Below, one piece after another: positions 1 through 60,059 of a stretch of DNA of 64,000 nt (its first letter is position 1; every line of letters begins with the position of its first letter). The notes under the pieces were generated by a model. The model was not told the origin of the DNA and made no database searches. It saw nothing but the letters and a program-made list of their open reading frames with translations. The translations under genes and the position numbers were made by a program. Origin of the DNA: Rhodosorus marinus CCMP1338 (lineage: Eukaryota; Plantae; Rhodophyta); the NCBI GenBank assembly GCA_029953675.1, contig JAMWBK010000008.1, positions 1 through 64,000 of the forward strand, given 5' to 3'.

Positions 1-338
1 CCCCAGACTAACGTAACCCCAGACTAACGTAACCCCAGACTAACGTAACCCCAGACTAACGTAACCCCAGACTAACGTAACCCCAGACTAACGTAACCCC
101 AGACTAACGTAACCCCAGACTAACGTAACCCCAGACTAACGTAACCCCAGACTAACGTAACCCCAGACTAACGTAACCCCAGACTAACGTAACCCCAGAC
201 TAACGTAACCCCAGACTAACGTAACCCCAGACTAACGTAACCCCAGACTAACGTAACCCCAGACTAACGTAACCCCAGACTAACGTAACCCCAGACTAAC
301 GTAACCCCAGACTAACGTAACCCCAGACTAACGTAACC
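1..338. repeat. Terminal telomeric array, 21 x CCCCAGACTAACGTAA (G-strand TTACGTTAGTCTGGGG)
   Basis: Perfect 16-bp period from base 1, with the C-rich strand on + at the left end. The same unit recurs as 1-2.5 copies at many internal junctions. Confidence 0.9.
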
Positions 339-416: not shown

Positions 417-3400
417 CTAATGGGTTGTGTGGCTACGTTCTAAGATAGGGACGATGTCATAGTCTGCTTCGTCGACACGACGTGCCTGGGTGGCAAGGAT
501 AGCGTTTCCTTTCCACAAAGTGCGGTTCAAGATCGCCCGAGCCTCACTTACTTGCGTTGCCCGCTGATCCAGGTGTATAGTCGCTTCCTTGAGGAACTCA
601 CTCGCTTGTTGTCCCATCTGCCCAAATGTTTCCAGGCAGAAGGGGACGAAGATGTCGTCGTTATGTTCTCCGATACTGTCACGGTATTTGGACTCTTTAA
701 ACTTTTCCGCTTTCCGTGCCGCATACCCGGTCTCCCAAGACGCTTTGTGGAGGTGTGTTCTTTGCAAAGGCGAGGTCACCTTCACATCGATCACGTAGAG
801 CTTGCCTGTTCGTGGGTGTCGGGCTAGAATGTCAGGCCGAAGCCGACTGCCTTGGTAGTGTCCGGTCGGTTCTATTGTCACTTCTAGTCGCCATTGTCTC
901 AGCACTGTCGCCAGGGCGTCCCTGACCATGTTATGCCGAATTGTCCAACTGCCGGTAGAGCTGGTGCAGTGGTGAAGGCGTTGAATGCCTGCAGCGTCGT
1001 GTGGTTGGGAACATATCGTACACGTACTAAGTATTCGTACACCCGGCAGGGGTAATCCCAACAGTTGTCGAAGGCTCAGGTTCAGTTCTCCGCTACTTAG
1101 GCCTCGTCCGTGTTTCCTTGGCAAGTCTCGCAGCCAAGTACCCCCTCCTGATCCCTTGCAGGAGCGTATTCGCGCACGTGCCGTCTCGCTGATCTCCGCG
1201 TTCTCCACCATTTCCTCGAATGCCCGTCGGTGACTCCAGTTGGAGAGGAGTTTTTGGGTTGAACCGATCAAGGGCCTGTCGGGTGGTGTGTGCGGGTTCT
1301 CTGCTTGTTCTTGGCTCTCCAACGATTGCCATTCTGTTAGGCGAAGTATGGGGGCCGGTGTTCCTCGTGCCAGGCAGCGTTTTGAGTGGAGGCTCGCTTC
1401 GATTAGTTGTGCTCCAAGTTGATCCGTCGAGTGGAGCAGGGGTCGAATGTGATGGTGCTCGGTCAGGTTCGTCGACGTGCAGGCATCGAGTAGCGCTCCT
1501 AGGTGGCTAGATCCAGTCCAATTGAGCTTCAGAGTCTGTCGCCAACTGCTGAAGAAGGCGAGGGGTTGTATTCGTGTTCTCATCGCTAGGCCTGCGCCAC
1601 CCCATCGGCAAGGGAGCTGGATCTGCGCTTCGACCACGTCTTTTGCGGGTCCTGTGAGGCCCTGGCCTTCGAGGAGCGAGCCGCACAGTTTGTCGAGTTC
1701 CAGGAGCGAGATGCGATCGGCTTCGCGTGCGAGATTGGCTCCGTATTGTAGGGCGAGCGTGCGTAGAGCAAAGTCTAGACGCGGTCCTGCGCAGTAGCGG
1801 AATAGGCACAGTTTAATTGGTAGCTCAGTGGTCGGTAGACGGATGACCTCTTGGACGAGTTTTCATGTTCTCGTTGTAGCTTCCTGTTCGCGTCTTGGAC
1901 GTAGGTCCGTGTGCCAATAGGGATGGAATAAAGTTGGATTCCGTCCCGGGTGACATGTACGTCGGGAATTTCCCTGTTGACGAGTCTGGTCGTCGGCAGT
2001 TGGAGTCCAAAAAGCTCGCATTTCGTCCTTTGAAGTTGTGCGCCTATTTCGGGGAGGTGGTGCTCGCTCCAGTGTAGCGCTTCTTTCACGTCCTTCAGAG
2101 GGCCAAGTAAGGTGAGGTCGTCGTGGATTGCGCTAAGGGTGATCCTCGGAAACCGGTCTCGTAGTGCTCGTAGGAGTGGGGAAAGGGCGAGCGCGTGTAA
2201 AGCAGGTCCCAACGGATCGCCTTGTTGGACTCCAGTCCAGGCTCGGAGCTGGAGCCAGTCATCGACATCGCTGTCTCGCCATCCGAATTGGCGTGGGGCG
2301 CTCTCGCCTCGTGGTCCGTAGCTCATTGTCATAAGCGACTTCAATTCGGGGAAAGCTAGCTCGATGATACGGTTTGCGAGGCGTCGGTCGATTCTGTTGA
2401 ACGCGTTTGCGAGATCAAGTTTGAGGAGCACGTCATTTGGGCGCGCTGCGAGGTGGGCTTCCGCGAGGTGGATGGCGTGTTCGCAGCCGCCGCTGACCGA
2501 GATGCCGAGTTGTTCCGGGAGCAGAAAGTCGCGAAGGGGCGTGGCGACAGCGCGAAGTGTCCATTGGGTGACGGCCTTCCGCAGTACCTCAGGAATCCCT
2601 AGCGGGCGTAGGCGAAGAGGGTACCCTTGTCTAGCTTCGGCAGACGTTCGCTTGTCTTTCGCGAGGAGTCGGTTGCTGCGCATGGCTTCGAGAAACACGT
2701 CAGGGAAGCTCTCCGGAGTGGTGGCAAGCTTGCGAAGGAAGCGTACAAGTACCGGTTGCGTTGTCATGGTGAGACTTCGCAGATGTTCGGCTTTGAGTCC
2801 ACTCGGCCCGGGGGCTGTGGCGTACGGTAGGTGTTCCAGCGTTGACAGGAGGCTCTCGTCAGAGGCCAAAGTCGGGTCCCATATATTGCGTTGCAGTCCG
2901 TTGAGCTTTGCCTGTAGGGCGTCTTCAAGCTCCGAGGAGAGCGTTGCGGCCTCGTACTCAGGGAAGAGCGTAGTCAGAACGCGCCAGGTGGCAGGAGTCT
3001 TCGAGGCAAGATCGGTGGCCAGTAGGAGTTGGCTAGACTGGGACATGCGTTGAGCTTTGGCGAGTTGTAGGGCTCGTTTCTGTCGGTGGCGGGTCTGAGG
3101 CGGCGAAGGTACGATACAGTTGGTGTCAAGGGTTTTGCTGTGAGCAGTAAGGTGTTCCCACACCGTGGAGAACCTTCCGTCCATAACGGCGAGCATCTGC
3201 GCAGAAGGGGCCAGGTCGCCTGTGTAGCCGAGTGCGAGACTGGGGAGAGCGAAGATGAACAGGCGTGACAGGTTCGGCGCTGACGTATCAAGGGCAAGTT
3301 CCAGGGCTTTCGACATGAGATGGTTCCAGCGTGTTTTCAGGTTATCGGGGACGAATTGGCGAGTAGGCGTCGGAGCCTGAGTCAGCTGCCACCAGCGGTT

Positions 3401-3568
3401 GCCATTATCGGTTACGTTGAGAGTGAAGTCGTGCAGAGACGAGAGCCAGGCGTTCGAGTCGGTCTCGAAGAGTGACTGCGTCGAAGTGGGAGGTCGTTGG
3501 CGACGAGCACGAGCACGGCGGGATGAGCGAGAGCGGTTCGGAGTATATTCGTCTGAGGAGCTGCTCAT
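417..3568 (-). CDS. T-A ORF2: reverse transcriptase plus restriction-like endonuclease, with one 1-bp frameshift near 1860
   Basis: Motifs include APGPSG, LRPLGIPEVLRK, LKLDLANAFN, GVQQGDPLGP, AIHDD, CxxC..HxC, RH, RPDI...IDVKV and PFCLETFG. Adding one A to the A-run near 1860 joins the two ORF-track pieces in frame (HEKLVQEVIRLP...). Confidence 0.88.
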
Positions 3569-5945: not shown

Positions 5946-5972
5946 ACCCCAGATAACCCCAGACTAACGTAA

Positions 5973-6779
5973 CCGTGAGCTTTATTGGGCACCCCAGACT
6001 AACGTAACCGTGAGCTTTATTGGGCAGTCGCCTAATGCGACGTAACACTAAGCCGATTGCTATCTAGGGAATCACTCACAACAACCCCGCTACCGGGGTC
6101 TCATGCTACGTTCAAAAGAAAAAACAGGAACCAGTGGGTTCTCCAACTGGTCCGCACGTAGAGCGCCTAACCCCAGACTAACGTAACCGTGAGCTTTATT
6201 GGGCAGTCGCCTAATGCGACGTAACACTAAGCCGATTGCTATCTAGGGAATCACTCACAACAACCCCGCTACCGGGGTCTCATGCTACGTTCAAAAGAAA
6301 AAACAGGAACCAGTGGGTTCTCCAACTGGTCCGCACGTAGAGCGCCAAGCGCAATCTCCGCGTTGCCCTGCCATAGGATCCTGTTTAACTGGGATCGTGC
6401 ATCCCTCAGCTCCTCATCTCGATGCAACAAGTGTTTACAACTGTCCCGCAAAAAGTCTTGCGTCAACCTCCCGCTCCGCCCAAAGGTCTCTATCGCGATC
6501 GGGATGAACTTCTCCTCGGGCTTTTCCACACTCATCGCCTCTTTATAGTGCGCGAGCTTGTAGTTCTCCGCCAGTTTCGCTGCATACCCGTTTTTACGGG
6601 TATTAACCCCAGACTAACGTAACCGTGAGCTTTATTGGGCAGTCGCCTAATGCGACGTAACACTAAGCCGATTGCTATCTAGGGAATCACTCACAACAAC
6701 CCCGCTACCGGGGTCTCATGCTACGTTCAAAAGAAAAAACAGGAACCAGTGGGTTCTCCAACTGGTCCGCACGTAGAGC
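5973..6779 (-). mobile_element. Tandem array of four 5'-truncated 3' ends of family T-D (about 18, 158, 415 and 157 bp), separated by single telomere units
   Basis: An identical 3'-UTR sequence restarts after each CCCCAGACTAACGTAACC. The longest copy encodes the endonuclease C-terminus (KFIPIAIETFGR...). Confidence 0.88.
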
Positions 6780-9798: not shown

Positions 9799-10497
9799 GG
9801 TGTCAGGAAATTTCCTATGGAATTTTCCAACAAATGCGATTTGCTAGTTTTGCCAGAGAAGCTCCATAGCTTCTCTTCCTGGCAGGAGACATGAGCGCAA
9901 GTTTTCCAGGCAACCGCGTTCTATTCATTCATAATGCCGGAACAAAATATTTCCTAGTTCCCGGCTGCGCGGGAGAGCCGTGGATCTGCCGCCGCCAGCA
10001 TGAGACGCCGCAAAGAGATCAAATACGCGGGGGCTTTGTCTTCCCCTGGTGTTCGTGCTTCGGCACTAGCACATCGCTTGGTACCCCTGATCATTGAGTG
10101 CTTTGGGTTCATGGACTCTGTTGGTTCTCGCTGGCTTCGGGAGTTGTTCCGCGAACGCCCTGACCGTCTTCAATCGTTGTTTACCCTTTTAAGTTTCCTG
10201 CTGTGGCGCATGAATGCCGCTTTGATGTTGGAGGCGCGAGTTCTTCGCCGCATTTAGTCTTTTTTTCCCCTCGGGGTTTTTTTTCAGCCTCCGATTAAAC
10301 CATTCGTTCATTCGTTGTAATATGGGCGTTCTGTCTGGTGTCAGGAAATTTCGTATAGAATTTTCCAACAAATGCGATTTACTAGTTTTGCCAGAGAAGC
10401 TATGGAGCTTCTCTTTCTGAGAGGAGACATGAGCGCAAGTTTTCCAGGCAACCGCGTTCTATTCATTCATAATGCCGGAACAAAATATTTCCTAGTT
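9799..10497. repeat. Two about 161-bp direct repeats (9799-9959 and 10337-10497) rich in short palindromes
   Basis: Direct alignment with few mismatches. The copies flank an X fragment. Confidence 0.8.
9960..10318 (+). mobile_element. 5'-truncated family X 3' end
   Basis: Encodes MRRRKEIKYAG...LMLEARVLRR, followed by the X 3' UTR and a cattcgttcattcgtt tail. Confidence 0.88.
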
Positions 10498-11095
10498 TGA
10501 TTGCGCCTGACTGTCGCGGCGCTTAATCGTTTTTCCAAACAGGGTTTATTTAATTTTTCTGAAAGAAATTATTCATTTCTATCACAACTATCTGGGGAAG
10601 GCTTCTGGGTGGTGCGCACTACGTATCGCAGAATCTTAGTTGAGAATTTGAGAGTATGTTCCGCCCTTCACATCATCATGGCACTCAGCCTGCGTTGCTC
10701 ATTTCTCGCGATAAGCGGTGTTTTGGAATCAGAAAGGTTCCAAATGATGTGGTGGTCGACTCCTTGGATGGTCTTTAGTCCTTGGATAGCTGGGCTTTAC
10801 TGGACTTTACTGGACTTTACTGGGCTTTACTAGCATAGCTAGCACAACCACCACCAAAACACCTCGGTTAGCTCAACGAGGTAGTTGAAGACCTATATAG
10901 GTCAAGCAAAAAGTAGCTGGAGGTTTGAAGGGAACAAATCAGAGCGAGCAATGAAAAGGTTACTTGTTGCGATTTGCAAGCGTCCGTCTACGATAATTCG
11001 CTGATAATTGAGTGCTTCGGACTACTGGAATCTGTGGGTTCTGGTTCGCTTTTGGATCTGGGAACGCCCTGGCCGTCTTTCCTCGTTCAACCAAG

Positions 11096-14000
11096 ATGAA
11101 TCGAACTTTTACGGTGATTGGGTGTATAACCCTAGCAATATTTCTCTGCGTCGGAGGAGTGAGAGCTGATGCTGAGAGCGTGTGTGATGGATGGGGATTC
11201 TCTAATACGACTTGTTTGATGGTTCAGGATGTGAGTTCTGGTTACGTGGATGGTGTTGAGAACGGAACGTTTGCAATCTATGCACCGTTCTTCTACGTGA
11301 TGGACTTCACCGCGGATACGACGGACACGACAGAATTGTTTGGAACTGAGCAGGATATCCTATTACACGCGTACTACGTTCTAATCAAGGGCGCGGCTGG
11401 GGCAGCTGCTGCAATGCGGGGTACGAACGTGACGATTGTGGCGAATATCATTGAGATCCAGAGCGATGGAGATTTTGAGATCAACCTGAAGGCAACGGAG
11501 GTCACGATCCCTCCTCCAAGCGCACCAGCCACACCCGAGACCCTCGATCCGATGCAGAGGACGAAAGACCCCAATACGTTTCGGGGTGGTGACATGGGTA
11601 CCATGGGAAGTTGGGGAGCCACCGGCAGCCAGGGCAACCAGGGGGGAAGCTTTACCATGGTCGCAAAGTACGTGAACATCGAGAGCCTAGTCGAGGGAGG
11701 ATATACCATGACCATAAGAACTGATGGAAGCGACGGTGGTACCGGTGGATATGGTGGAGACGGAGGTAACGCGCAGATGCCTATCGATGGAATGGCGTGT
11801 GGCAAGAAGAACAGCTGGGTGGGTGGGAAGTGCAAGGATTCTTGGTGTAACGAGTGTCCAACGGGTACCATGAACGGCGATAAGAAGCCATGTCTGTACT
11901 ATCAGCCGGGTTACCCGCAGCCGGGCGGCCAGGCGGGACATGGAGGAACTGGAGGAGCTGGTGGGCTGGCAGGCACCGTACATATCTACTCGAGCGTTGT
12001 TATCGGAGGCGAGGAAGAGAACGGGCTTAGCAATGAGGCGGCGGCTGCATACTTCAATGGGGAATCCAATTCCGGGGGAGGGGGACCAGGCGGGGAGCCA
12101 GGAAATCCCGGATTAGGGGGTCAGCTCACGGTGAATTGCTACACGAGAACATGGCAGAAGAACTATATTCTGAACACGAACTACTACGAAACAGTTTCGT
12201 CAGGATATCCGCTTGTCGGCGATGTTGGACTGACCAACCACGCCGGAAAAAGTGGAGAGGAGTCTCACGACCCGCTACCGATGTCATTCCGAGCGACAAT
12301 CGGCGCTGAAGTCGAGGAGTGGGACACCAATGAGTACGACGATCCGCGATCCTTTGCGTTCGAAAACTTTCCGCAGCCGTTGGCGTACATCGACTACGGT
12401 CTCAGCCTCTCGAAGAGGATGCTGGATATTATGTTCTTTAACGATGATGCTGAAGAAAACCAAAACGCGTACACCGTAATTCTCTTGTCGGTTTCCGATA
12501 TGCTCTACAATGCTCAGCTAGTTGCCAATCGGACTTCAGACGAGACGGAGAAAGCCAAGTACACCTCGCTAGCTGGAAAGGCGATTTCTATTATCAAGGC
12601 GGCGAATCCGTTGACCACCTCCTCGGGTACGAATGCCAACCAGGTCAGCGTCATGAGCTTTGAGTACCTGCTCGACTACCTTGAAACACAGCGCCAGCTC
12701 GGAGAATCCTTGGAGTACTACTACGACGCCTACCGAAGCAGCGTCGAGGATTCGGAAGCTTCCATGGAGCTCCTCTCCAATGCGACGAGCAACGCGCAGA
12801 CGGGTATCGCCACGCAGTTGGCCAAGCAGCAGGCTCTGATGGAGGAGATCATGGAGGTGAACCGGTCGATGTCGGTAGCTGATCAGAATATTTGGAAGTA
12901 CCAGAGCACCATGGAGTTGCAGCAGGGTGAGATGGATGAGTGCTGGCGTAAGGTCGAAAAGCGTGCCAAGTTCGAAAAGGTGATGCAGTTTGTGAGCTTC
13001 TTTGTTAGCGTCTTTGACGCGGCATTCGCAGTGACCAAGGTGTTGTCCAAGGCCGGCAGTTGGACCAAGAGTGCTTCGCTCTCAGATACAACGAAGTCGG
13101 TGTTCTCCGGCATTGAGGGCTGGAGCGGTGCCAAGTTTTCTATGATACCTTCGCTGACGAATGAGATGGTGGACTTCTTCCCTTCGCCTGGAGAAAGCGC
13201 CGACTGGTCAGGGTACGAAGTGAGCTACGACGCGATCATGGCCGACATTGGCCTTCTTACGGAGGGAACGGAGACCCTCGCGGATCCGCTGGAGAGCGTC
13301 TACAGTGCAGACGACTACGACGAGGCCGTGGCGCTAGCTGCTCAAATTAGCGATGTTCAGACCTCTGCCAGTAGTGCGATGGTGGCACTTGACCGACAAG
13401 AGCTTCAAGACTACGTGGGGTACATGAAAACAGAGTGCTACACCTCGGCGACTGCATTCCTTCGGGCATTCGATGGGCTGGAGATGTGGGTCAACCAAAA
13501 GAACGACCTCATCGCGCTTTACTCCTCCTACATGAGCTACCTCAAGCAGGTCACGGCAACAAAGCTCTACCTCCAGAACGTCGTGGCTGCACTGGCGGTC
13601 GAGATGAAGAACAACATGATAAATCCCGCCGCACCCGCTGTTAAGGTCGCTCACCAGACCAACTACAACCTTCTGATAGCCGATTTTCACCGAGATCTTG
13701 AGGCCGTCTTCACCGCGAGGAACTATCTCATGATGGGCTCGATGTCGTCAGTAGATACCATCAGCCTCGCAGACTGCGAGTGGGAAACTTCCCTTCTGGA
13801 CACATCAGGGAGCCTATACTTCAGCTGTGCATCAGACGCGATCATTCAACTGCGTAAGTCACTCAAGAGTTGGTACGAGACCTCCTATACGAAAAACCAA
13901 CTGATGGAGTATGGCACCTTCTGGGGCCCTTACAATATCAAGGCGGAGACAGTAGGAGAGGATAACTGGGCGGAGTTTCTGGAGACGGGGTCCATCAATT

Positions 14001-15034
14001 TCTGCGTTGACCCATCGGATCCAGCTTTCAACAATCTCCCGGGACTAGAAGATCCGCTCTTCTTCCCCATGATTTCGATGAATAGCATGTTTGTCGTTTT
14101 CGACGGCGTATCGCATACGAAGAGTCCAGTCGTCGACATCACGCACAAGAGCATGTCCGGGGTCACTCGAGTTGCAGAGGCGGAAGATGATGAGGACTCG
14201 ATGTACTACGTGAAGAAGTATACGCACGCCAACCGAAAGCGAACGTTTATGTACTTCGGAGGTGCACCTGCAGGTGACGAGCTAAGCGTCAAGGAGTGGA
14301 TGGCGTCCGACTACATCCGGCAAAACGCCGTCTTCTCAACGGAGGACTTCATCGACATAAGCCCATTCAGCAACTATCAGATCGATGCCAGGCTCCAGGA
14401 CATCAAGGCCATTACTAACATTCGACTCTACTTCACCGGAAGCTACGTGAGGTCGAACTTTGCCGACGCCCTCAACTCGACAATTCCAATCATGTGCAAC
14501 TCTTTCGATTCGGATGAGACCCCGACTCCCACTCCAACCCCGACACCGACAACGACTCCGACTCAGACACCCACGCCGACACCGACTTATACTGGGACTC
14601 CTACGACGTCCCCGACAACGGCTCCGGCTGAAACATCGTCCGGGCTACCACTTCTGGAAACCGTGGCTCGAGAGCAGGAAGTGGGTTGCGGTTCTTACAA
14701 GGTTTCAGTAGAGAAGGTTGCATCCTGGACGAGACTCTCCGGTGAGACGGCTAGCGCCTGTATGATCACTTTCTCGTCGACGGAGGCTTCTGTGAACCTG
14801 CCGAAGAGCCTTGAGGTATCCTGGGAATGGCCTCAAAAACCGAAGGGAGTTGCATGGGAGCAAGCAGATGGCGTCGTCATCAGCTCAAACGAGGTTCTCG
14901 GCGCATTGAGCATTTCCGCTAAGCGAATTCAGGGCTTGTCCGAGGCTGTCACAGTCGCGATCTCTGAGACCTGTCCAGACAACGTTGAAATCGTCGCAGT
15001 TAACCGATCCAAGTGTGGACGGACTTTGGGCTAA
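11096..15034 (+). CDS. Secreted 1312-aa putative pore-forming or Tc-toxin A-like protein with Gly-rich repeats, coiled coil and hydrophobic hairpin, Pro/Thr linker and CBM-like C-terminus
   Basis: Intronless long ORF with a signal peptide (MNRTFTVIGCITLAIFLCVGGVRA). It has GxxGxxG tracts, FLETGSINF...SPFSNYQID...ITNIRLYFTG resembling the TcA C-terminal domain, and a (TP)n linker. The ORF is solid; the function is inferred. Confidence 0.8.
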   Translation: MNRTFTVIGCITLAIFLCVGGVRADAESVCDGWGFSNTTCLMVQDVSSGYVDGVENGTFAIYAPFFYVMDFTADTTDTTELFGTEQDILLHAYYVLIKGAAGAAAAMRGTNVTIVANIIEIQSDGDFEINLKATEVTIPPPSAPATPETLDPMQRTKDPNTFRGGDMGTMGSWGATGSQGNQGGSFTMVAKYVNIESLVEGGYTMTIRTDGSDGGTGGYGGDGGNAQMPIDGMACGKKNSWVGGKCKDSWCNECPTGTMNGDKKPCLYYQPGYPQPGGQAGHGGTGGAGGLAGTVHIYSSVVIGGEEENGLSNEAAAAYFNGESNSGGGGPGGEPGNPGLGGQLTVNCYTRTWQKNYILNTNYYETVSSGYPLVGDVGLTNHAGKSGEESHDPLPMSFRATIGAEVEEWDTNEYDDPRSFAFENFPQPLAYIDYGLSLSKRMLDIMFFNDDAEENQNAYTVILLSVSDMLYNAQLVANRTSDETEKAKYTSLAGKAISIIKAANPLTTSSGTNANQVSVMSFEYLLDYLETQRQLGESLEYYYDAYRSSVEDSEASMELLSNATSNAQTGIATQLAKQQALMEEIMEVNRSMSVADQNIWKYQSTMELQQGEMDECWRKVEKRAKFEKVMQFVSFFVSVFDAAFAVTKVLSKAGSWTKSASLSDTTKSVFSGIEGWSGAKFSMIPSLTNEMVDFFPSPGESADWSGYEVSYDAIMADIGLLTEGTETLADPLESVYSADDYDEAVALAAQISDVQTSASSAMVALDRQELQDYVGYMKTECYTSATAFLRAFDGLEMWVNQKNDLIALYSSYMSYLKQVTATKLYLQNVVAALAVEMKNNMINPAAPAVKVAHQTNYNLLIADFHRDLEAVFTARNYLMMGSMSSVDTISLADCEWETSLLDTSGSLYFSCASDAIIQLRKSLKSWYETSYTKNQLMEYGTFWGPYNIKAETVGEDNWAEFLETGSINFCVDPSDPAFNNLPGLEDPLFFPMISMNSMFVVFDGVSHTKSPVVDITHKSMSGVTRVAEAEDDEDSMYYVKKYTHANRKRTFMYFGGAPAGDELSVKEWMASDYIRQNAVFSTEDFIDISPFSNYQIDARLQDIKAITNIRLYFTGSYVRSNFADALNSTIPIMCNSFDSDETPTPTPTPTPTTTPTQTPTPTPTYTGTPTTSPTTAPAETSSGLPLLETVAREQEVGCGSYKVSVEKVASWTRLSGETASACMITFSSTEASVNLPKSLEVSWEWPQKPKGVAWEQADGVVISSNEVLGALSISAKRIQGLSEAVTVAISETCPDNVEIVAVNRSKCGRTLG

Positions 15035-15159: not shown

Positions 15160-16979
15160 ATGGATTCGTTGCAACCATGCTTTTCACCGCCTATGAACGA
15201 TAGACACCCCACATTGTGACGTATCCAAGCGTTATTCGTGTTTGCCTTGGCCATGTCCTTTGTGACTGTGTACCGAAAGAGGCTTGCCAGTGTGTCCCTG
15301 GTGAGACGTGCGAGTATACCGGTATGTTTCCGGGGGATTCGTGTGAGACCGAGTTTGGCACTGGGGTAGGGCGCGAAAGAGATGTAAAAAGGAGCCGAAT
15401 TTGGCGTTTCAATTGGGAGTTCTTACCATTTCACATCTCTGCCATAGCTCGTAGCACAGAGATCGGACAGTATTGGGTGCAATTGCAGAATCAATTGTAC
15501 CCTTTCGCCTTGTGACGGCGACCCCGAAAACTGCGAAGACTACACCTTCGGCACATGTGATTTGGAGGATGGCGAGAGAGGGGTAGGCAGTGAACCCGCT
15601 CGGAGACCTTGCCCATAAACGTGTTTCTCACTGAATACTTTTTTTTCTATATTACCCCTGGAGTTAGATCGTAGTACCAACTTCAGTGCCTGGCACATGT
15701 ACGTGTCAGCGTTGTGATCCGGGCAAGTGTGCACACCCTGACGCTGGATGCATTGTCGAAGGAAAGTCGTGCAGTAATCTTAACGGGCTAATGGACGTGA
15801 GTTCAATATCTAGAAGTAGAATCGCTTGGCTAGCCCGAGAAGCTCACGTACGCATGCGATCTGTTTCTGCACCATTTCAAAACCTTTACAAAGGTCTTCT
15901 TCACGGACGACACGACGAAATGTAACTGTGGTTGTGATTTAAATATCCCAGACCAAGCCGGTAGGTCGGCAAGTTCAGGAGGCGTTTGTCTTCAAGGTTT
16001 AGCCCGTGGCGTGGTATGTGGGAAATATCGAATTGAACGTGCCGTAGAGATGGATCCAGGTGTCGTGCTTACATATCTCGCGCTCTCTGTCCACACGCGC
16101 AACGCAGGTCGTGACTGGAAACGAGGAGGGCGAGTGTGGTTGCCAAGTGCAAAACTGCACCTCTTCAAGCTGTGAAGGCCCCGATTGTGAAACGTTCGAT
16201 GGCGTCCTAGGAGAGACATGCGACTCGGACACTGGCGTGAGTCTAGAACCTTCAAGTCAAGATATGCGATATCGGAACTCACCGTCCTCTTTGACTCTTG
16301 TCCTGTTCCTTCCCCCGAGTGCAGATCGTCGAGATTCTCCAAGACGGCAGTTGCAAATGCCAACCGATTTGTCAGACTGTCAACTGCGACGACGAACCGG
16401 AAATTTGCACTGATCCAGACGGGACACCAAAAGTTGGAGATGTGTGCGTCCTTGAATTCGATAGTCTTGGGGTTAGTAAATTTCTGGATGAGCGGACAAA
16501 ACTTCTTGAGGAATGTGACCCCCCAACTTTTCTCCATGGACTGTCCCACCAGGTTCTAGAAGCCTCTTCAGATGTCGCTGGTGAATGTGACTGCGTTGCT
16601 CCAACCTGCGTTTACACGTATCAAATAAGAATTGGCCGTAACAGTATTGGGACAGGTTTTGGTAATCCCGGCGACGCATGTACTACTAGTGAGGCCCCCG
16701 GGGTAGGGAGGAAATACGCCAAGATCAAAACTCGTCAGCCTTTCGAAATGTTCTCACCTGCATCGTACGATTCTTGCCGACCAGGTGGTCAGCGACGAAT
16801 GCGAGTGCGAGCCGTTGTGCGATGTGGAATGTATTCCAGTAGGTTGTCAGACGGATACCGGTCGATGCAGAGAGGAAATACCTCCAGTAATTGTCAATGG
16901 ACAATGTCTCACGAGCTCCGAAGTAGCTGGGGTAAGTGGATGTTTTTTTGTATATGACGATGGGCGGGGCGGAGTATAA
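15160..16979 (+). CDS. Multi-exon Cys-rich (CxC/GDxC repeat) extracellular protein; start and exon limits approximate
   Basis: Cys-rich peptide blocks occur in alternating frames (CDCVPKEACQC, CQPICQTVNCDD, CECEPLCDVEC), separated by short GT...AG segments. The final stop is at 16979. Confidence 0.55.
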
Positions 16980-20330: not shown

Positions 20331-21846
20331 GGACTTTACTAGCATAGCCTGAAGCGCTACGCAAAGCGTGAAGATGAACTAATAACTAGGGAGGGAAGCA
20401 TGCAACACCAGGCGCCGATGGCGCGCCTCGGAAAGCATGTCGCTGGAATATCGCCAAAGGGAGACACTTAAACGCCTCAAGACCGCCAAATATTCAGTAG
20501 GATGCTCAGCAAAACATTTCCGCAACCACTCTAAACCCGACTTATCCACGTGACCAAAGCTTTCCACAATGGATGGCTGGAACCGGTGAGAGCGACCCTC
20601 AGCGCAAGGCAGACTGGCCATGCTCTCAGCATACCTTCGTTCCTTAACTCTTCGAAGGGCTGAAGCCGCGGCCCCCCGGCGGCGGGCGGCTGCGGTGAGG
20701 TGGGCGCTGGCCACGGGGCAGGTAATCGCAAGGTCCACATATGTTGAGCGTCTGGCAGCAGCGTCAGAGACGAGGAGATCGGCTATACAACGGGGCGGTG
20801 CAGAGTCCGAGCTTGATCTGGGCAGTTCCGACTCAACCTCAACCGTATGCCCTATCCGAGTCAAAAATTCGCTGAGGATGTACTTGAGGCGAGTGTGACG
20901 CCTCGTACGGAGACCTCGCAACAGTCCGCAGGAACCCAGGAAGTGGTAGCCACAAGCGTCAATCCGGCTCTCACATCCCTGACAGAAAGACGGCCGATTA
21001 GAGTGGCACGGAGCCTGTGGCAAACCGAGATAGATGCGTGCGGCAGAACGGAACTGGAAAGCATCGAGACGATGACTCAATGACGACGGTAGAGTGGTTA
21101 ACCACAAGTGCGAGAGGTGGCCTCCCATGGCGCGGAGACGAGCGGCAGTGGTAGGCGGCGTGAGAGGAGAATTGAGCATGACTGTGGGAGCGGCACTGTG
21201 TTGGCCCCAGGTGAGGCTATGTTGAATCACATCAGTGCGGGAGCTCCACAATCGGCTCAAACCCGGGTAGTCTGCAACAGGGGACCCGGGGCTAGCCTCT
21301 CCGTCATCGGCAAGAACTCGGTCGAGGGGACAATCCTCAATCGCTTCAGCTAGTCCCCATAACAGGTCCCTCCAGGAACGAAAGCGGCACCGATTTGCGT
21401 CCGGCACGGCGTTGCACCTCCTGAACGCGTGTTGAAGACCATCATAAATTGTCAAAAGCGGGGGCGGCAGGGTCACTGGATCCTCGTTGGTCAAAGCTCG
21501 AGCCAAGAGGCAGGCACTTCGCATCTGGAAGGTCACCAACGTTCGCAGCGCGGTAGCCCAGGAGGCAACCGCCGCTGGCGAGCATACCAGCCCACGGTCT
21601 GCGACGCCGAATCCCCCTAATCGCAACGGTAGAGCGATCTGTGCACGGATAAAGTCCCTGTCGGGAGCAGCTTCAAGATCGAGGGGCTCATCCAAGAGCG
21701 TTCCCCAGTGTTGCAGGGTCATTTCGTCGGCTTTAGCCGCGATCCACGAGCCCCAAGCTGGAGGCAGGCTGCGCAACCAGTAGTTGAGTCTGGGACCGGC
21801 ACAAAAGCGGGAAAGCAAGCAGGCCGATTGCAAAATGCTGCAAACG
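20331..21846 (-). mobile_element. Family Y, 5'-truncated (post-RT region, zinc knuckle, endonuclease, 3' UTR, tail)
   Basis: ORF 20379-22070 contains LPLRLGGFG, CQGC..HFLGSC, RH, IADL..YVDL and PSIVESFG. The tail ggactttactagc starts at 20331. Confidence 0.88.
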
Positions 21847-29633: not shown

Positions 29634-29673
29634 CCCCAGACCAACGCAACCCCAGACTAACGTAACCCCAGAC

Positions 29674-31570: not shown

Positions 31571-31982
31571 TTCAGTCAGGTATGGCCATTCATCTTCATT
31601 GTTCCGGAAGGTGTTTCTCCATGACGAGTAAAACGCGATGGGTTGGACGCGCTTTCGAGTAGCGAAACCCAAACCTCCCCAGCGGCAGGGCAGAGCGATT
31701 TGGTCCGAGATCAGCTCTGCGTACTCATCGTCCTCTACAGCTGTCGTAGCGAGGCCTCCGGTTAGAATTTCCAGGTGATATCTGGTCATCACGTCGGCCT
31801 CGCGTGCCAGATTTCTTCCAAACTCGTATGCGAGGCATCGTAGCACATAGTATAGTCGCGTTTCTGCACAGAACCTGAAGAGGGCAATTTGCGTCGTAAG
31901 CTCCGGTTGTGGGAGCTTGGCGATTTCCGCAAAGAGTTTCTCATGCTTATTTTGCAACCCCCGGCACTCCTGTTCGATATAT
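31571..31982 (-). mobile_element. Internal ORF2 fragment of family T-H
   Basis: QIALFRFCAETRL..LPCRWGG matches 44514-44780. Preceded on the minus strand by two telomere units (31983-32017). Confidence 0.85.
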
Positions 31983-32017
31983 AACCCCAGACTAACGTAA
32001 CCCCAGACTAACGTAAC

Positions 32018-34936: not shown

Positions 34937-35404
34937 ATTTCGAAAAATAAAAAAAGGGTCAGAAGGGGCGCTGTTATTAGGAAAGTAGATGGTTATCGTA
35001 GTGCTGAGAGCAGCTCCCGGCTCCGCATTCTGAACGACCGTTGCCGGCTCCGCACCCTGAACGACCGTTGCCGGCTCCGCACCCTGAACGACCGTTGCCG
35101 GCTCCGCACCCTGAACGACCGTTGCCGGCTCCGCACCCTGAACGACCGTTGCCGGCTCCGCACCCTGAACGACCGTTGCTGGCTCCGCACCCTGAACGAC
35201 CGTTGCCGGCTCCGTACCCTGAACGACCGTTGCCGGCTCCGCACCCTGAACGACCGTTGCCGGGCCAGCACTCGGAACGAATTTGTGACTGGCAACCTGA
35301 ACGCCCGCCTGATTTTTCTCCGCAAGATGAACTTTCTCGATCAGCGGAACCGCCATCGTGAACCCTAGCACGGCGACAAGAATTAATGCGCTCAACTTCA
35401 TCAT
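34934..35404 (-). CDS. Small secreted protein with 9 x PATVVQGAE (27-bp tandem repeat); the stop codon lies at the junction with a T element
   Basis: Signal peptide MMKLSALILVAVLGFTMA. The repeat lies at about 35023-35270, and the TAG is shared with the element's tagcatgagacccc. Confidence 0.6.
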   Translation of the reverse strand: MMKLSALILVAVLGFTMAVPLIEKVHLAEKNQAGVQVASHKFVPSAGPATVVQGAEPATVVQGTEPATVVQGAEPATVVQGAEPATVVQGAEPATVVQGAEPATVVQGAEPATVVQGAEPATVVQNAEPGAALSTTITIYFPNNSAPSDPFFIFRN

Positions 35405-35639: not shown

Positions 35640-36530
35640 CGGGCATTCCTGCAAGATGGCGAGAGCACTATGTGTACCTCGTTCCGTCAATAACAATGAC
35701 CTGAGTGACTACAACCTCCACGCGGTCAAAATCTATTGACTATAACCATCAGTGCTCACCGGGTGGAGAGTTTGGTCTCGCATTTGGAGTTTCTGATTTG
35801 TTCGGAAATGCGAGTAATTCTCGAATCATGAGGCTAGTGGTTATTTACCGTCTGCGGGAGAGCGCAGTGGAACTACCGCGGCAACGATGAGACGTCGCAA
35901 AGAAGTGAAATATGCGGGGGCCTGATCTTCCGCTGGAATACGAGCTTCGGCTTTTCATCATACCTTGATACCTGTTTTGGTCATTGAGTGTTTTGGGTTT
36001 ATTAACTCCGTTGGTTCTCGTTGGATTCGGGATTTGTTCCACGAGTGCCGTGACCGTGTCTCCTCGTTGTTTACCCGTCCAAGTTTCCTGCAATAACCTG
36101 AGTGACTGCAACCTCCGCGCTGCCAAAAACTCCTGACTGTAACCATCAGTGCTCACCGGGTGGAGAGTTTGGTTCTCCCACTTGGAGTTTCTGATTTGCT
36201 CTAATTCTCGAATCGTCAGGCTAGTCGTTATTTACCGGCTGCGGGAGAGCGCAGTGGAACCACCGCGACAACGATGAGACGTCGCAAAGAAGTGAAATAT
36301 GCTGCGGCCTGATCTTCCGCTGGAATACGAGCTTCGGCTTTTCCTCATGCCCCGATACCTGTTTTGGTCATTGAATGTTTTGGGTTTATTGATTCCGCTG
36401 GTTCTCGTTGGATTCGGGAGTTGTTCCGCGAACGCCGTGACCGTTTCCCCTCGTTTTGTTCACCCGTCGAAGTTTCCTGCTGTGTCGCTGTTTCGCTGTT
36501 AGATCCTGGCAATCTTCACGGGATCTAGTC
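35640..36530 (+). mobile_element. Old, tandemly duplicated X-like endonuclease relics
   Basis: Degenerate matches to the X 3' region (cgatgagacgtcgcaaagaagtgaaatatgc occurs twice). Confidence 0.6.
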
Positions 36531-43477: not shown

Positions 43478-44374
43478 ATGGGTTTCGATTTCAACAAGAT
43501 ACCGGATCAGAGCGGGAAAGTCGCGATTGTTACCGGATCGAATATCGGCATTGGGTTCTCTACCGCAAAGTACCTCGTGCTTAACAACGCACACGTTATC
43601 ATCGCGTCGCGAACCCCGAAGAAGGGACTTGATGCAGTAGCGGAGCTCAAGAAGATGAAGCCTGATGCCAAGGTGGAGTTCATGCAGCTGGATTTAGCGA
43701 ATTCGGATAGCATAAGATCGTTTGCAAACGCGTTTATCGAGAAAGGACTGCCGCTTCACCTTCTCGTCAACAACGCCGGTGTAGGGGGGGTCCCACATTC
43801 CAAGACCGTGGATGGCTATGAAGTAACGCTAGGGACAAACCATTTGGGGACGTACCTACTAACGATTCTACTGTTAGACACGCTGAAGAAGTCGGCTCCT
43901 GCAAGGGTGGTCACAGTGTCGTCACTGATGGCGAACATGTCAAAGGCCGACCTAGATGATGTGGCGGGAAGGAGCTACGAGAAGAGCGGTCTTGATGTGT
44001 ATGGGACTAGCAAGCTGTACAACGTTATGTTCGCGCAAGAGCTTGATAATCGCGTGCGGGCGGACGGAGTAAGGTCGTTTGTGGTACAACCCGGTGTTGC
44101 AAAATCGGATTTGCTGAGAAAGGCAGAAACGAGCGCGGTGACAAGGATTACGAAGGGGATGAAGTTCATGATGCAGGCTCCTGACAAAGGTGCAATTTCC
44201 ACCCTGTACGCAGCAACATCGGACGAGGTGCTCGCTACTGGAGCTTCAAAAATGTATGGACCGAACATTATGAACATGGGAAACACACGAGCAGGAAAGA
44301 TCGCAAGCAAGGATGTGACTGCCACCAACAACAAGATCCTGTGGGAGAAGACCCAGGAACTTGTGGGTGTATAG
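43478..44374 (+). CDS. Short-chain dehydrogenase/reductase, retinol-dehydrogenase/WWOX-like classical SDR
   Basis: Motifs VAIVTGSNIGIG, LLVNNAG, TNHLG, VVTVSS and YGTSK. Confidence 0.92.
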   Translation: MGFDFNKIPDQSGKVAIVTGSNIGIGFSTAKYLVLNNAHVIIASRTPKKGLDAVAELKKMKPDAKVEFMQLDLANSDSIRSFANAFIEKGLPLHLLVNNAGVGGVPHSKTVDGYEVTLGTNHLGTYLLTILLLDTLKKSAPARVVTVSSLMANMSKADLDDVAGRSYEKSGLDVYGTSKLYNVMFAQELDNRVRADGVRSFVVQPGVAKSDLLRKAETSAVTRITKGMKFMMQAPDKGAISTLYAATSDEVLATGASKMYGPNIMNMGNTRAGKIASKDVTATNNKILWEKTQELVGV

Positions 44375-45523: not shown

Positions 45524-48122
45524 GAACGAATGGTTTAATCGGAGGCTGAAAAAAACCCCCGAGGGGAAAAAAAGACTAAGCGCGGCGAAGTACTCGCGCC
45601 TCCAACATCAAAGCGGCATTCATGCGCCACAGCAGGAAACTTAAGCGGGTAAACAACGATTGAAGACGGTCAGGGCGTTCGCGGAACAACTCCCGAAGCC
45701 AGCGAGAACCAACAGAGTCCATGAACCCAAAGCACTCAATGATCAGGGGTACCAAGCGATGTGCTAGTGCCGAAGCACGAACACCAGGGGAAGACAAAGC
45801 CCCCGCGTATTTGATCTCTTTGCGGCGTCTCATGCTGGCGGCGGCAGATCCACGGCGCTCCCCTGCAGCCGGGAGATAACGACTAGCTTGAGGGTTAGGA
45901 ACAGCAAGATCAACGTATGTGGTACGGCGGCTGTCGTCACAGGTGATCACCAGGTCGGCTACACGGCGTTCATCATTTTGAAAGTCCGCGACGGGTAAAG
46001 GTTTCTCACGTTCGATTTCCAGACCGGCTTGCCGGACTATAGGCCGAAGTTCCCGGTATAACAGGTTCAAGATCCGTGTATGGCGGCGGGTTCGAGCACC
46101 TTTCACCGCCGGGCAACTAGCGAGCAGGTGGGCGCCAAAATCTGCGTTGTCGTCAGTCTGAGAGCAGAGAGGGCACGACGAACCCATCTCGTACGGCCAA
46201 GGGGGCTGATGTAAGCCGAGGTATAAGCGCAGTGAAGTACGCACTTCGAAATCCGACAGTGTGAGTGGCGGAAAGGCTGGTACGGTCATGAGCCACTGAG
46301 AGCTAATAACCCCTCCAAGACTACGTAGGCGGGCGCGAGCGCGAGAAGATGAGACCATCTGCGCGAGGAGTCGGCCATATGCAGCACGGTGCAAGTCCCA
46401 AGAAAGGATACTTTGCAGCGCATCCGTGCGTGCTTGAGCTCGGCTCCCAGCGCGCTGGGAATCATCAGGAGGATCAACTGGAACTTCTTCTTCTGCGGCA
46501 ACCACTGGGTCAATCTCCCCTAGAACAGGTTCAGGCGCAGGACGAATCCCCGGGGTGGAGCCTCGAGAGCGGTCAAATACAGCTCGCCAGTCAGGAAGAC
46601 GGGGTTGAACGGTTTAGGGGAGACTAGTACAGGAATTCAGGGCGGTTTGGAGCTCCAGAAACAAGTCTTGGGCGCTTTCCGGTACGCTGGGAAGCAAGAC
46701 ACCCCGCGAGAGGCTCGCCATCAAATTGCGGAACCTCGAGATACCCAAGCTGCTCAAAGTGGGAAGTGCGGTTCCCCAGGCCCCTACTGCGGCTGCAGGT
46801 TGGACCACAACACGATTGCAGAGGCCCAGTCCCCCCAATCGCAATGGGAGGCCTACCTGGGCGCGCACAACATCACAGGTGGGTCGCGGCAGAGCGCTCA
46901 GCTCGTCGTCGAGAAAATACCCCAGGTCACGGAAACTTTCAGCATCCGCACGAGTGGCCAACCACCGGCCCCAATGAGTTGGAAGTGAGCGAAGCCAATA
47001 GGTTACCCGCTGACTGCAACAATACCGAAACAGCAACAACGAGCACTGGAGAAAGCCCAGAGGTAGCCGTCGAAGCTCTGCAACCAGCTGTCTGTGCTTA
47101 CCGAGGAGCTGCAGCAACTCGCCTTCAACGAAGGACGGCGACCCGTAGGGGATGCCTAAGTGGACAAAACCATCCGGTCTCCAAATATCCTGGAACGACG
47201 CAGGTACCTGCTGCTCTTGTGCAGCTACACCTCCCCAGTAGAACGATTTGTGATGATTAACCTCCAAGTCAACCCGCGAAGCCAAGGAGCGGAGACGATC
47301 ATAAGCGAGCGCTAGAGTATCGGGGGGCCCCAGGAGGCACACGTCGTCGTGGTATGCAACCGTACGAACCTGCGGGAATTCGGAGCGAAGACAAAGCAAG
47401 ACGAGTTGTAGTCCACAGGCATGTAGGAAAGGGGACAAGGGATCACCCTGTTGTACCCCTGTGCGCGCCGCAAACGTGTGTGAGGAAGCGCCAAGGGTGT
47501 CATAGGTAGCCCCACGACCAAGCGGAGAATAAAGTCTACTAACAAAGGGAAAGCCTACGGGGAAGACTTCGCGCACCACGTGCATGAGAGCCGGACGAGA
47601 GACGCGGTTGAACGCATTGATAAAATCTACAGAGAGGAGCCCAGAATCTGGGGAGTACGCCATTTCCGAACGGAGTAAAACAGACAACAACTCACAGCCA
47701 CCACGATAGCCCACGCCTAACTGCACGTGCCCAAAGAAACGGCGGGATTCGGGAACCAGGATTTTCACTAACCATCGCGCCGCCAATTTGCGGACCACCT
47801 CAACCAGGCCAATAGGGCGAATAGCAGGGCTCGAGGCCGTGTGACCGGGCTTCGAAAGCAGACACAACTGCGAACGCCCGGCCAAGAACCACGCACACTC
47901 ACACAGGGGATCACCATTCACAAGCGCTTCGACCACCAACGCCAACGCCTTCAAACCTTCATCACTTAAGAAACGGAGATATTCCACCCCCAGCCCCGAG
48001 GGCCCTGGGGAACGGCCCTTCGGAGCATCATGAACCAACTCACGCACCGCCTCCAGATTGACCACTAACCGCGCACTGGGATGTGGCGCGGCGCGGTACT
48101 CTTCCAACACTGATTCAAACGA

Positions 48123-49505
48123 AGAGCTGAGCGCTCTGCCGCGACCCACCTGTGATGTTGTGCGCGCCCAGGTAGGCCTCCCATTGCGATTGGGGGGACT
48201 GGGCCTCTGCAATCGTGTTGTGGTCCAACCTGCAGCCGCAGTAGGGGCCTGGGGAACCGCACTTCCCACTTTGAGCAGCTTGGGTATCTCGAAGTTCCGC
48301 AATTTGATGGCGAGCCTCTCGCGGGGTGTCTTGCTTCCCAGCGTACCGGAAAGCGCCCAAGAGTTGTTTCTGGAGCTCCAAACCGCCCTGAATTCCTGTA
48401 CTAGTTTCCCCGAAACCGTTCAACCCCGTCTTCCTGACTGGCGAGCTGTATTTGACCGCTCTCGAGGCTCCGCCCCGAGGATTCGTCCTGCGCCTGAACC
48501 TGTTCTAGGGGAGATTGACCCAGTGGTTGCCGCAGAAGAAGAAGTTCCAGTTGATCCTCCTGATGATTCCCAGCGCGCTGGGAGCCGAGCTCAAGCACGC
48601 ACGGATGCGCTGCAAAATATCCTTTCTTGGGACTTGCACCGTGCTGCATATGGCCGACTCCTCGCGCAGATGGTCTCATCTTCTCGCGCTCGCGCCCGCC
48701 TACGTAGTCTTGGAGGGGTTATTAGCTCTCAGTGGCTCATGACCGTACCAGCCTTTCCGCCACTCACACTGTCGGATTTCGAAGTGCGTACTTCACTGCG
48801 CTTATACCTCGGCTTACATCAGCCCTCTTGGCCGTACGAGATGGGTTCGTCGTGCCCTCTCTGCTCTCAGACTGACGACAACGCAGATTTTGGCGCCCAC
48901 CTGCTCGCTAGTTGCCCGGCGGTGAAAGGTGCTCGAACCCGCTACACGGATCTTGAACCTGTTATACCGGAAACTTCGGCCTATAGTCCGGCAAGCCGGT
49001 CTGGAAATCGAACGTGAGAAACCTTTACCCGTCGCGGACTTTCAAAATGATGAACGCCGTGTAGCCGACCTGGTGATCACCTGTGACGACAGCCGCCGTA
49101 CCACATACGTTGATCTTGCTGTTCCTAACCCTCAAGCTAGTCGTTATCTCCCGGCTGCGGGGGAGCGCCGTGGATCTGCCGCCGCCAGCATGAGACGCTG
49201 CAAAGAGATCAAATACGCGGGGGCTTTGTCTTCCCCTGGTGTTCGTGCTTCGGCACTAGCATATCGCTTGGTACCCCTGATCATTGAGTGCTTTGGGTTC
49301 ATGGACTCTGTTGGTTCTCGCTGGCTTCGGGAGTTGTTCCGCGAACGCCCTGACCGTCTTCAATCGTTGTTTACCCGCTTAAGTTTCCTGCTGTGGCGCA
49401 TGAATGCCGCTTTGATGTTGGAGGCGCGAGTACTTCGCCGCGCTTAGTCTTTTTTTCCCCTCGGGTTTTTTTTTTTCAGCCTCCGATTAAACCATTCGTT
49501 CGTTC
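48123..49505 (+). mobile_element. 5'-truncated family X copy inserted antisense into X, with 11-bp TSD GATTCAAACGA
   Basis: TSD at 48112-48122 and 49506-49516. The flanks rejoin as ...DSSFESVLEE... Confidence 0.92.
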
Positions 49506-58046: not shown

Positions 58047-58477
58047 TGTTTTGTCTTTGACGAACATGATAGGAAGCAACGACTGAACTCAGCAAAGTAC
58101 CAAAGAAGTCTGGAGACGAAAACAAATACCACCGGAACCTTCGGCTCCCCCTCCCTCCCCCCTTTGGCGACGATGAGCCAAGTCCGAACCTCGAAATTCC
58201 TGGAGACGAAAACAAACACCACCGGAACCTTCTGCTCCTCCTCCCTCCCCCCCCTTCTTTACCTTGACCCGCGATCGACCAACACGAACAGATTTTATTA
58301 TCTCCCACGGCTTTAACGGATTTTTTCTCCCCAACGGCTTTTTTCTCCCCGACGGCTTTTTTCTTCCCAACGCCTTTTTTTCAGGCCAACGTACTGTATG
58401 TTTTTTTCCCTTTTTTTGGAGAACGATAGTGCTGTGCTTCCCATCGTACGCCGGCAATCTGGTCTTGAAATTGGATT

Positions 58478-59950: not shown

Positions 59951-60059
59951 ACCCCAGACTAACGTAACCGTGAACGCTTTACTAGAGGACTCCCTAGTGG
60001 AGCCCGTAAGGAAGGAAGAAGCAATCTATCTATGCGTTAAGAAACCCCTAGTGGGTAAC

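Follow-up and report, generated by a model that had tools for sequence, protein, structure and literature searches.

A secreted red algal protein with a possible fold-level counterpart of the Tc-toxin A-subunit channel

An uninterrupted gene for a multi-domain protein

The locus described here lies on the forward strand of the window, by which we mean the whole 64,000-nucleotide stretch of Rhodosorus marinus DNA that was analysed. It holds a single long open reading frame (ORF) at 11012–15034, whose first ATG is at 11096 and which encodes 1,312 amino acids with no internal stop. With a GC content of 54% and homologues at E values down to 1e-219, this 1,312-codon frame is not a product of chance. 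The encoded protein, for which an exact look-up of the full product returned no record, is secreted, has a mass of roughly 140 kDa, and combines several domains with nine N-glycosylation sequons. Along the gene we delineated the following features:

11096–15034, + strand: complete intronless gene, 1,312 codons plus stop, without a product in the public annotation
11096–11167, + strand: signal peptide, aa 1–24 (Kyte–Doolittle hydropathy, KD, 2.25; similar N-termini in paralogues; cleavage after aa 24 placed by eye)
11213–11500, + strand: N-terminal beta module, aa 40–135 (strands in the model, pLDDT 65–82)
11501–12295, + strand: Pro-rich spacer and Gly-rich module, aa 136–400, with a beta strand after each Gly-X-Y tract
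11588–11650, + strand: Gly-X-Y tract 1, aa 165–185 (G168–G184 invariant)
11726–11770, + strand: Gly-X-Y tract 2, aa 211–225 (from the sequence and the alignment of relatives)
11798–11893, + strand: Cys-rich insert, aa 235–266, with five Cys (C235–C266; C251 invariant)
11927–11980, + strand: Gly-X-Y tract 3, aa 278–295 (from the sequence and the alignment of relatives)
12074–12127, + strand: Gly-X-Y tract 4, aa 327–344 (from the sequence and the alignment of relatives)
12338–13765, + strand: helical region, aa 415–890, about 13 predicted helices (DSSP of the model)
12830–12961, + strand: strongest heptad-periodic segment, aa 579–622 (heptad contrast), running into the hydrophobic element
12971–13045, + strand: conserved hydrophobic element, aa 626–650 (hydropathy and alignment), followed by a variable polar loop
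13778–14470, + strand: beta-sandwich domain, aa 895–1125 (model and alignment)
14507–14653, + strand: Thr/Pro-rich linker, aa 1138–1186 (composition and DNA periodicity)
14654–15031, + strand: C-terminal tail, aa 1187–1312, a domain of some 125 residues (predicted all-beta, two conserved Cys pairs, WEW motif)

Much of this layout had been described in an earlier note made from the DNA letters, and its descriptive part held up well. The signal peptide it proposed is the most hydrophobic 19-residue window of the protein, and the N-terminal beta module behind it is retained in the paralogues, in the homologue from the jakobid Andalucia godoyi (P0003) and in P0005. The four Gly-rich tracts do surround a Cys-rich insert, which sits between tracts 2 and 3, and the glycines at every third residue of the tracts are invariant across relatives; in P0008 and P0005 the likeness to the window protein is limited to this Gly-rich N-terminal module. 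A collagen triple helix was considered and rejected, as the tracts comprise just 5–7 triplets and no Pfam collagen family matches.

The helix said to lead into a hydrophobic stretch is likewise there. Heptad contrast peaks at aa 579–622, just before the hydrophobic element, and again at aa 701–737, a level that was reached in 4 of 200 shuffles. The element itself spans about 22 residues, one of them an Asp, and its 19-residue core (KD 1.82) is exceeded in hydropathy solely by the signal peptide. Its hydrophobic character is kept in all five relatives, and thus across red alga and jakobid. The polar loop behind it is variable, being 46 residues longer in Andalucia through an insertion, and the segment that returns from it lacks hydrophobic character.

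Further downstream, all the beta-region motifs quoted earlier (including FLETGSINF) are present and partly kept in the jakobid homologue, and no part of the family is under stronger constraint than the beta domain (dN/dS 0.13, compared to 0.21 overall). The (TP)n linker has its core at aa 1142–1166, reaches to about aa 1186 and is underlain by periodic DNA at 14517–14587.

The tail is a different matter, as its likening to the carbohydrate-binding modules CBM2 or CBM49 found no support. It resembles these in being small, predicted all-beta and placed behind a Thr/Pro linker, with a Cys pair near both ends in two of the three aligned tails. However, only one Trp-x-Trp motif is conserved in the tails of the family: WEW alone is invariant among the three, and conservation does not extend to the other Trp of the window copy, so that there is no conserved row of aromatics. 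Pfam returned no CBM in the window protein or in Rhodosorus P0001, tail included, and CBM folds are absent from the top 50 Foldseek matches of a model of aa 885–1312, in which the tail has a pLDDT of about 45–55. Tail sequences of the window protein and its paralogues share 24–28% identity, with the Cys and WEW conserved; the modelled tail has seven strands, and its best local Foldseek match is the Ig-like DUF1425 fold (E = 0.05). A tail profile searched against PDB sequences found only 4lpl_A, a glycosyl hydrolase family 31/fibronectin type III domain protein, at a non-significant E of 0.11.

A patchy family in a red alga and a jakobid

The genome of R. marinus encodes four paralogues, the window gene being one of them. 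All are intact, lack introns and evolve under purifying selection, and the public annotation misses or truncates all four. A full-length transcript was observed for one paralogue; the window copy itself was not found in two strain transcriptomes. The paralogues are old (35% identity), and their loci sit in repeat-rich regions. Retroposition of the window copy from a sister copy was rejected, as the only nucleotide similarity between it and the other loci lies in flanking dispersed repeats. The intronless state, which the earlier note had pointed out for the window gene and which its uninterrupted frame bears out, is common to all four copies and atypical for a genome that averages about three introns per gene (PMC10250338). 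The neighbour downstream fits the description of an intron-rich gene, and we take it to be multi-exonic because its six Cys-rich modules sit in alternating frames (15261–16907).

Sequence relatives are few. Among 1.84 billion representatives the family is confined to one red alga and one jakobid; four of the five sequence hits are eukaryotic and none is attributed to a bacterium. Judged by sequence, Andalucia godoyi ANDGO_06449, labelled ‘Twitchin’, is a true homologue of the window protein, collinear with it over about 1,136 residues (E = 3.7e-18) and sharing the N-terminal module, the Gly tracts, the helices, the hydrophobic element and the beta domain. It differs behind the beta domain, where fn3 repeats (four Pfam-matched stretches) and a transmembrane anchor replace the TP linker and tail. 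From the signal peptide and this C-terminal membrane anchor we infer that the shared module would be placed outside the cell. Word-based protein searches, run with the whole protein and with the family alignment, gave nothing useful and missed the known relatives too, probably as Gly-rich words filled the candidate list, and scanning metagenome and viral contigs for patterns brought up no relative. The four large, conserved genes of expressed type that the public Rhodosorus annotation lacks or cuts short make up an uncharacterised family that is almost without sequence relatives among those representatives.

This distribution speaks against bacteria as the source of the horizontal acquisition that had been suggested as a possibility for the gene. 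The named relatives are eukaryotic, and the GC and GC3 of the window gene equal those of its paralogues and lie near those of its neighbours.

Fold-level comparison with Tc-toxin A subunits

The beta region and the helices had been likened to the TcB-binding domain and the channel found in A subunits of bacterial Tc toxins. Sequence and profile searches gave nothing that bears this out. No Pfam family, TcA_TcB_BD, CBM2 and CBM49 included, matched the window protein or the C-terminal halves of five members at E values up to 10, and no TcA-domain family (shell, neuraminidase-like, receptor-binding or TcB-binding) matched P0001–P0005 at E values up to 0.1. Searches of PDB sequences with phmmer and three family profiles returned no Tc chain at E values up to 1–10, and the NCBIfam and PDB matches that did appear (InlK, AaBgIC and WAVE1) were discarded as low complexity, since only the TP linker or the Gly tracts gave rise to them.

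Structure models gave a different picture. We built AlphaFold models of aa 26–1125 (model 1, pLDDT 43) and aa 885–1312 (model 2, pLDDT 41), which are not independent because both draw on one shallow alignment of 3–6 rows. Foldseek searches of the PDB ranked Tc-toxin A subunits first for both models (pLDDT 41–43; TM 0.05–0.25). For model 1 the top match is YenA2 (E = 1.7e-5, probability 0.99), with TcdA1, XptA2, TcdA4 and TcaA–TcaB also found, at E values that surpass those of generic jelly-roll capsid proteins by only about a factor of ten. The alignments to Tc subunits cover 493–585 columns (493–533 to YenA2), a length that fits the combined span of pore helices and TcB-binding sandwich, which amount in YenA2 to 309 and 173 residues, 482 in all (PMC6486591). 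Model 2, with the beta domain, linker and tail, matches YenTcA (E = 1.5e-3, probability 1.0, r.m.s.d. 7.5–11.7 Å), compared to probabilities of 0.1–0.2 and r.m.s.d. of 17–20 Å for viral jelly rolls, and the beta domain alone matches 6l7i_A (179 aa, ‘part of TcdA1’; TMt 0.42).

The apparent likeness to the five A subunits lies in the order of parts as modelled: long helices are followed by a C-terminal beta sandwich placed directly behind them, which closes the conserved module in the window family, and a hydrophobic element lies within the helices, with heptad-periodic flanks in the window protein. The differences are as plain. The window protein comes from a eukaryotic host, is about half the size of TcdA1 and has no detectable sequence similarity to the toxins; it lacks the alpha-helical shell, the knot, the stretched linker and the neuraminidase-like and receptor-binding domains, in whose place its N-terminal half is beta- and Gly-rich, and it carries extra appendages behind the sandwich. 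The short, Asp-containing hydrophobic element, its variable loop and the polar return would also fit the tight transmembrane hairpin of Tc type poorly. Nor is a TcB or TcC gene found near the loci of the family: we detected no TcB/TcC-like ORF (RHS, SpvB and TcB families) among the window's 30 other ORFs of at least 200 aa or near the three other paralogue loci, including the ORFs beside L004 and L005. The ‘stand-alone’ effector of the earlier note agrees with this as far as these four loci go.

The Tc-like reading is thus partly supported, at the level of the fold: rank and aligned length in the model searches suggest it, and sequence and profile searches do not. Based on the models, the rear 300 or so residues of the helical region are candidates for Tc-like channel helices and the beta sandwich at aa 895–1125 is a candidate counterpart of the TcB-binding domain. 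Taking both together, we hold with slightly less than even confidence that aa ~590–1125 may be the counterpart of the pore-forming apparatus of Tc-toxin A subunits. In such an arrangement, long paired helices with the conserved hydrophobic element would widen into the beta sandwich, the protein would oligomerise so that its helices make a channel or stalk, and the hydrophobic element of the channel helices might engage and insert into a membrane. The N-terminal beta/Gly-rich module would stand in for the Tc shell and receptor-binding domains, and the region behind the sandwich would tether the device to the producer's own surface, by the TP linker and small beta domain in the red alga and by an FN3 stalk and membrane anchor in Andalucia. 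Any cargo or target would be a matter of inference from this likeness.

Among eukaryotic surface proteins, the teneurins, animal relatives of the TcB/TcC cocoon, offer an earlier example of Tc-toxin parts (PMC6425310). These derive from the B/C cocoon, however, and not from the A-subunit channel, and the window protein has no Pfam match to an RHS or YD-repeat family. In the literature we located, the cocoon in teneurins is the only Tc-toxin part reported so far in eukaryotes. We therefore put forward, as a tentative proposal held well short of even confidence, that the first counterpart of the A-subunit channel outside bacteria may lie in this family, which the red alga and the jakobid would share with giant viruses. 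A new beta/Gly-rich head would here be combined with a core of channel and sandwich, and a tether would hold the whole to the surface of its producer. If so, bacterial ABC toxins would be linked with surface machines of giant viruses and protists, the known range of the translocation machinery would widen to algae, jakobids and giant viruses, and the question would arise of what such a device does on the surface of a protist or virion.

Alternative readings and a giant-virus match

The protein might instead be a glycoprotein that serves the extracellular matrix or adhesion and forms no pore, building or binding the mucilage or wall of the alga. Its Gly-rich tracts would then be short and collagen-like, its stalk a coiled coil, its sandwich of lectin-like or jelly-roll type, its TP linker mucin-like and its small tail Ig-like. 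The hydrophobic element would be a helix buried in the core, and the high rank of Tc subunits an artefact of poor models. The models are indeed poor, the jakobid homologue sits at the surface as a type I protein and carries, like adhesion receptors, an FN3 array, and the TP linker, the nine sequons and the Ig-like DUF1425 match of the tail all suit such a protein, as does a variable polar loop that could lie at the surface. Yet Tc A subunits top both searches over a fitting length, above many other helical and sandwich proteins in the PDB, the roughly 1,100-residue module itself matches no adhesion, lectin or collagen family, and the element stays hydrophobic from red alga to jakobid; we regard this reading as rather unlikely. 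Far less credible is a pore former of the ClyA, Hbl or YaxAB type, which would be alpha-helical and stand-alone, with a helical bundle and a hydrophobic head. Long helices with one central hydrophobic element of about 22 residues would agree with it, but the window protein has a far larger helical region, to which large beta domains are fused, no such toxin is among the 50 best Foldseek matches for model 1 or model 2, and no Pfam or PDB sequence match points to one, so that we give it very little credence.

The Tc-like reading leaves room for a separate question of origin. Foldseek against BFVD returned a full-length match to A0A481Z1I0 of Mimivirus LCMiAC02 (E = 1.2e-23, probability 1.0, 1,139 columns), followed by an invertebrate iridovirus protein (E = 2.2e-6). 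The Mimivirus protein is uncharacterised and of similar size (1,032 aa), but it shares only 14% identity with the window protein and has no match in sequence searches. Because of this structural match to a giant-virus protein, a viral route is worth testing. The family could be one of giant viruses (NCLDV) that moved between viruses and protists, having first served at the virion surface or in entry, with algal copies that were captured and whose present role may differ. Besides the two viral fold matches, the four intronless copies in a genome with about three introns per gene, their repeat-rich surroundings and the patchy spread over one red alga and one jakobid would accord with this. Against it stand the native GC and GC3, the age of the paralogues, the lack of a viral match at the sequence level and the nature of the comparison, which sets one predicted model against another, with a poor query model (pLDDT 43). 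An endogenous giant-virus island around the gene was rejected, as Pfam detects no NCLDV hallmark family in the 30 further ORFs of at least 200 aa that the window contains. On balance we consider a giant-virus origin improbable; being a statement about origin, it would be compatible with a Tc-like mechanism.

An intronless gene family with few relatives

The sole long open reading frame of its region (11012-15034, forward strand) runs for 1312 codons without a stop from its first ATG at 11096, and the public Rhodosorus marinus annotation gives no product for it. Reading the genomic loci, we found four intact members of this family in the genome, all of them uninterrupted.

Family members in R. 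marinus
11096-15034, forward strand: window copy, 1312 aa
L001:5596-9408: paralogue, 1270 aa, annotated as a 657-aa fragment
L004:10001-13792: paralogue, 1263 aa, annotated as a 328-aa fragment
L005:9602-13408: paralogue, 1268 aa, annotated as a 150-aa fragment

Of the four, the window copy diverges most, with 35-36% identity to the other three, which share 61-74% among themselves. Purifying selection acts on the family, with a dN/dS of 0.17 between the L004 and L005 paralogues and of 0.21 between the L004 genome copy and a full-length transcript of another strain (92% amino acid identity); in this second comparison the beta domain is most constrained (0.13) and the linker and tail least (0.35). 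That transcript means that one paralogue is transcribed unspliced; no transcript of the window-type copy was found in two strain transcriptomes.

Features of the window protein
aa 1-24: signal peptide, more hydrophobic than any other part of the protein
aa 165-185, 211-225, 278-295 and 327-344: four Gly-X-Y runs
between the second and third Gly-X-Y runs: cluster of five Cys
aa 579-622: strongest heptad-periodic segment, preceding the hydrophobic element
aa 626-650: hydrophobic element, directly after the heptad-rich stretch
behind the beta region: Thr/Pro linker, with periodic DNA underneath (14517-14587)
C-terminal end: conserved tail

The layout described in the earlier note, from signal peptide, Gly-X-Y tracts around a Cys cluster and a heptad stretch leading into a hydrophobic element to a beta region with several quoted motifs, a Thr/Pro linker and a C-terminal tail, was recovered in full; the heptad level of aa 579-622 was reached in just 4 of 200 shuffles. 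When aa 1-1105 were searched exhaustively with phmmer against 1.84 billion representatives, only five clusters emerged, three from R. marinus, one from the jakobid Andalucia godoyi and one containing a 704-aa protein. The Andalucia protein is collinear over roughly 1136 aa (N-terminal module, Gly tracts, helices, hydrophobic element and beta domain) and continues beyond the beta domain with FN3 repeats and a transmembrane anchor, whereas the red alga has the Thr/Pro linker and tail, so the two lineages differ in the appendage behind the beta domain. As the Andalucia appendage clearly anchors the protein in the membrane of the cell that makes it, the red-algal linker and tail may, by analogy, be a tether too. 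The 704-aa protein (P0005; L002:504-2618, on a 3.5-kb contig of GCA_003429145.1) shares the N-terminal beta and Gly-X-Y module only, so this module may exist separately from the rest of the protein.

Identity among the aligned red-algal tails is 24-28%, and the alignment shows two Cys pairs and a WEW motif. Reading the tail as a carbohydrate-binding module (CBM) is a guess, with no such signal in Pfam, the PDB profile search or the fold matches.

Resemblance to Tc-toxin A subunits

The earlier note had also likened the protein to Tc-toxin A subunits, a likeness that appears in structure comparison and not in sequence. Pfam, proposed there as a check for Tc and CBM families, yielded no family at E values up to 10, NCBIfam gave no meaningful match, PDB chains were matched only through low-complexity segments, and family profiles brought no gain over single-sequence searches. 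AlphaFold models built from 3-6-row alignments were poor (pLDDT 43 for aa 26-1125, model 1; 41 for aa 885-1312, model 2), and Foldseek against the PDB ranked Tc-toxin A subunits first for both. Model 1 matched YenA2 (E = 1.7e-5, probability 0.99) as well as TcdA1, XptA2, TcdA4 and TcaA-TcaB, over 490-585 aligned columns. Model 2 matched YenTcA (E = 1.5e-3, probability 1.0), XptA2 and TcdA1 over 216-260 columns at an r.m.s.d. of 7.5-11.7 Å, and also a 179-aa entry labelled as belonging to TcdA1 (TMt 0.42). YenA2 has pore helices of 309 residues and a TcB-binding sandwich of 173 (PMC6486591), a sum in line with the columns aligned between it and model 1, and the roughly 300 columns that model 1 has beyond model 2 fit helices upstream of the sandwich.

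Generic jelly-roll capsid proteins were matched as well, with E values only about tenfold weaker than those of Tc for model 1, and with far lower probability and far worse r.m.s.d. for model 2. We tentatively prefer, at somewhat short of even chances, a reading in which a channel core of Tc-A type would be carried by a new head, with the rear end of the protein possibly serving as a tether. Against it stand the poor quality of both models, the lack of any sequence signal, the missing Tc shell, the absence of a partner gene nearby and the hydrophobic element itself, a short stretch that includes an Asp and gives way to a polar loop of variable sequence. The main rival, which we hold to be less likely, is that the protein is a matrix or adhesion glycoprotein.

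Origin of the family

R. marinus has 8392 genes with 24,821 introns (PMC10250338), so four genes of 3.8-3.9 kb without a single intron are atypical of it. A recent acquisition from bacteria is not supported, since GC and GC3 of the window copy match those of the paralogues and are near those of neighbouring genes, and none of the five phmmer clusters was attributed to a bacterium. Among viral predicted structures, model 1 (pLDDT 43) gave a full-length match to an uncharacterized protein of Mimivirus LCMiAC02 (E = 1.2e-23, 1139 columns, 14% identity), followed by an invertebrate iridovirus protein (E = 2.2e-6). In view of the patchy distribution and the Mimivirus match, the hypothesis that genes were exchanged with giant viruses merits a test. 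None of the window ORFs matched a viral hallmark family in Pfam.

Neighbouring genes and repeats

The downstream neighbour (15204-16976, forward strand) consists of short Cys-rich modules, at least six in number, whose reading frame alternates (six lie at 15261-16907), and is apparently multi-exon, with one module per exon, in keeping with the suggestion of an intronless gene beside an intron-rich one; Pfam found no family for one piece of it. Repeat-rich DNA surrounds all four gene copies, and dispersed repeats are 97-98% identical between the window (9961-10309, 20331-21840) and the paralogue loci (L004:4798-5149, L005:4830-6339). These repeats and the STEAP-like gene (54150-55646), whose product is on record at 100% identity from a 2.12-Mb contig and falls into a 90% cluster with an R. 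marinus transcriptome protein, assign the window to R. marinus or a very close strain.

Other genes in the window and paralogue loci
1775-3568 and 46614-48302, reverse strand, and 59970-61751, forward strand: RVT_1 reverse-transcriptase ORFs
L004:2203-5094 and L005:3523-5238: RVT_1 reverse-transcriptase ORFs, a few kb upstream of those paralogues
43478-44374, forward strand: short-chain dehydrogenase, an ordinary host gene
54150-55649, forward strand: single-exon STEAP-like reductase, an ordinary host gene
57462-58079, reverse strand: amidase fragment, probably one exon, an ordinary host gene
L005:1-818: Hint (hedgehog/intein-type) domain gene, about 9 kb upstream of the L005 paralogue and probably unrelated to it

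At the start of the window (1-338) a 16-base unit is repeated 21 times in perfect tandem, and short arrays of this unit recur at 5956-6026, 29634-29673 and 31982-32017, flanking two reverse-strand ORF blocks, one with a reverse transcriptase. It may represent a telomere-like repeat of the contig end, carried or targeted by retroelements; the main text of the genome paper names no telomere unit. Elsewhere, nine copies of a 27-base unit (35017-35263) are followed by two of a 387-base unit (35694-36480).
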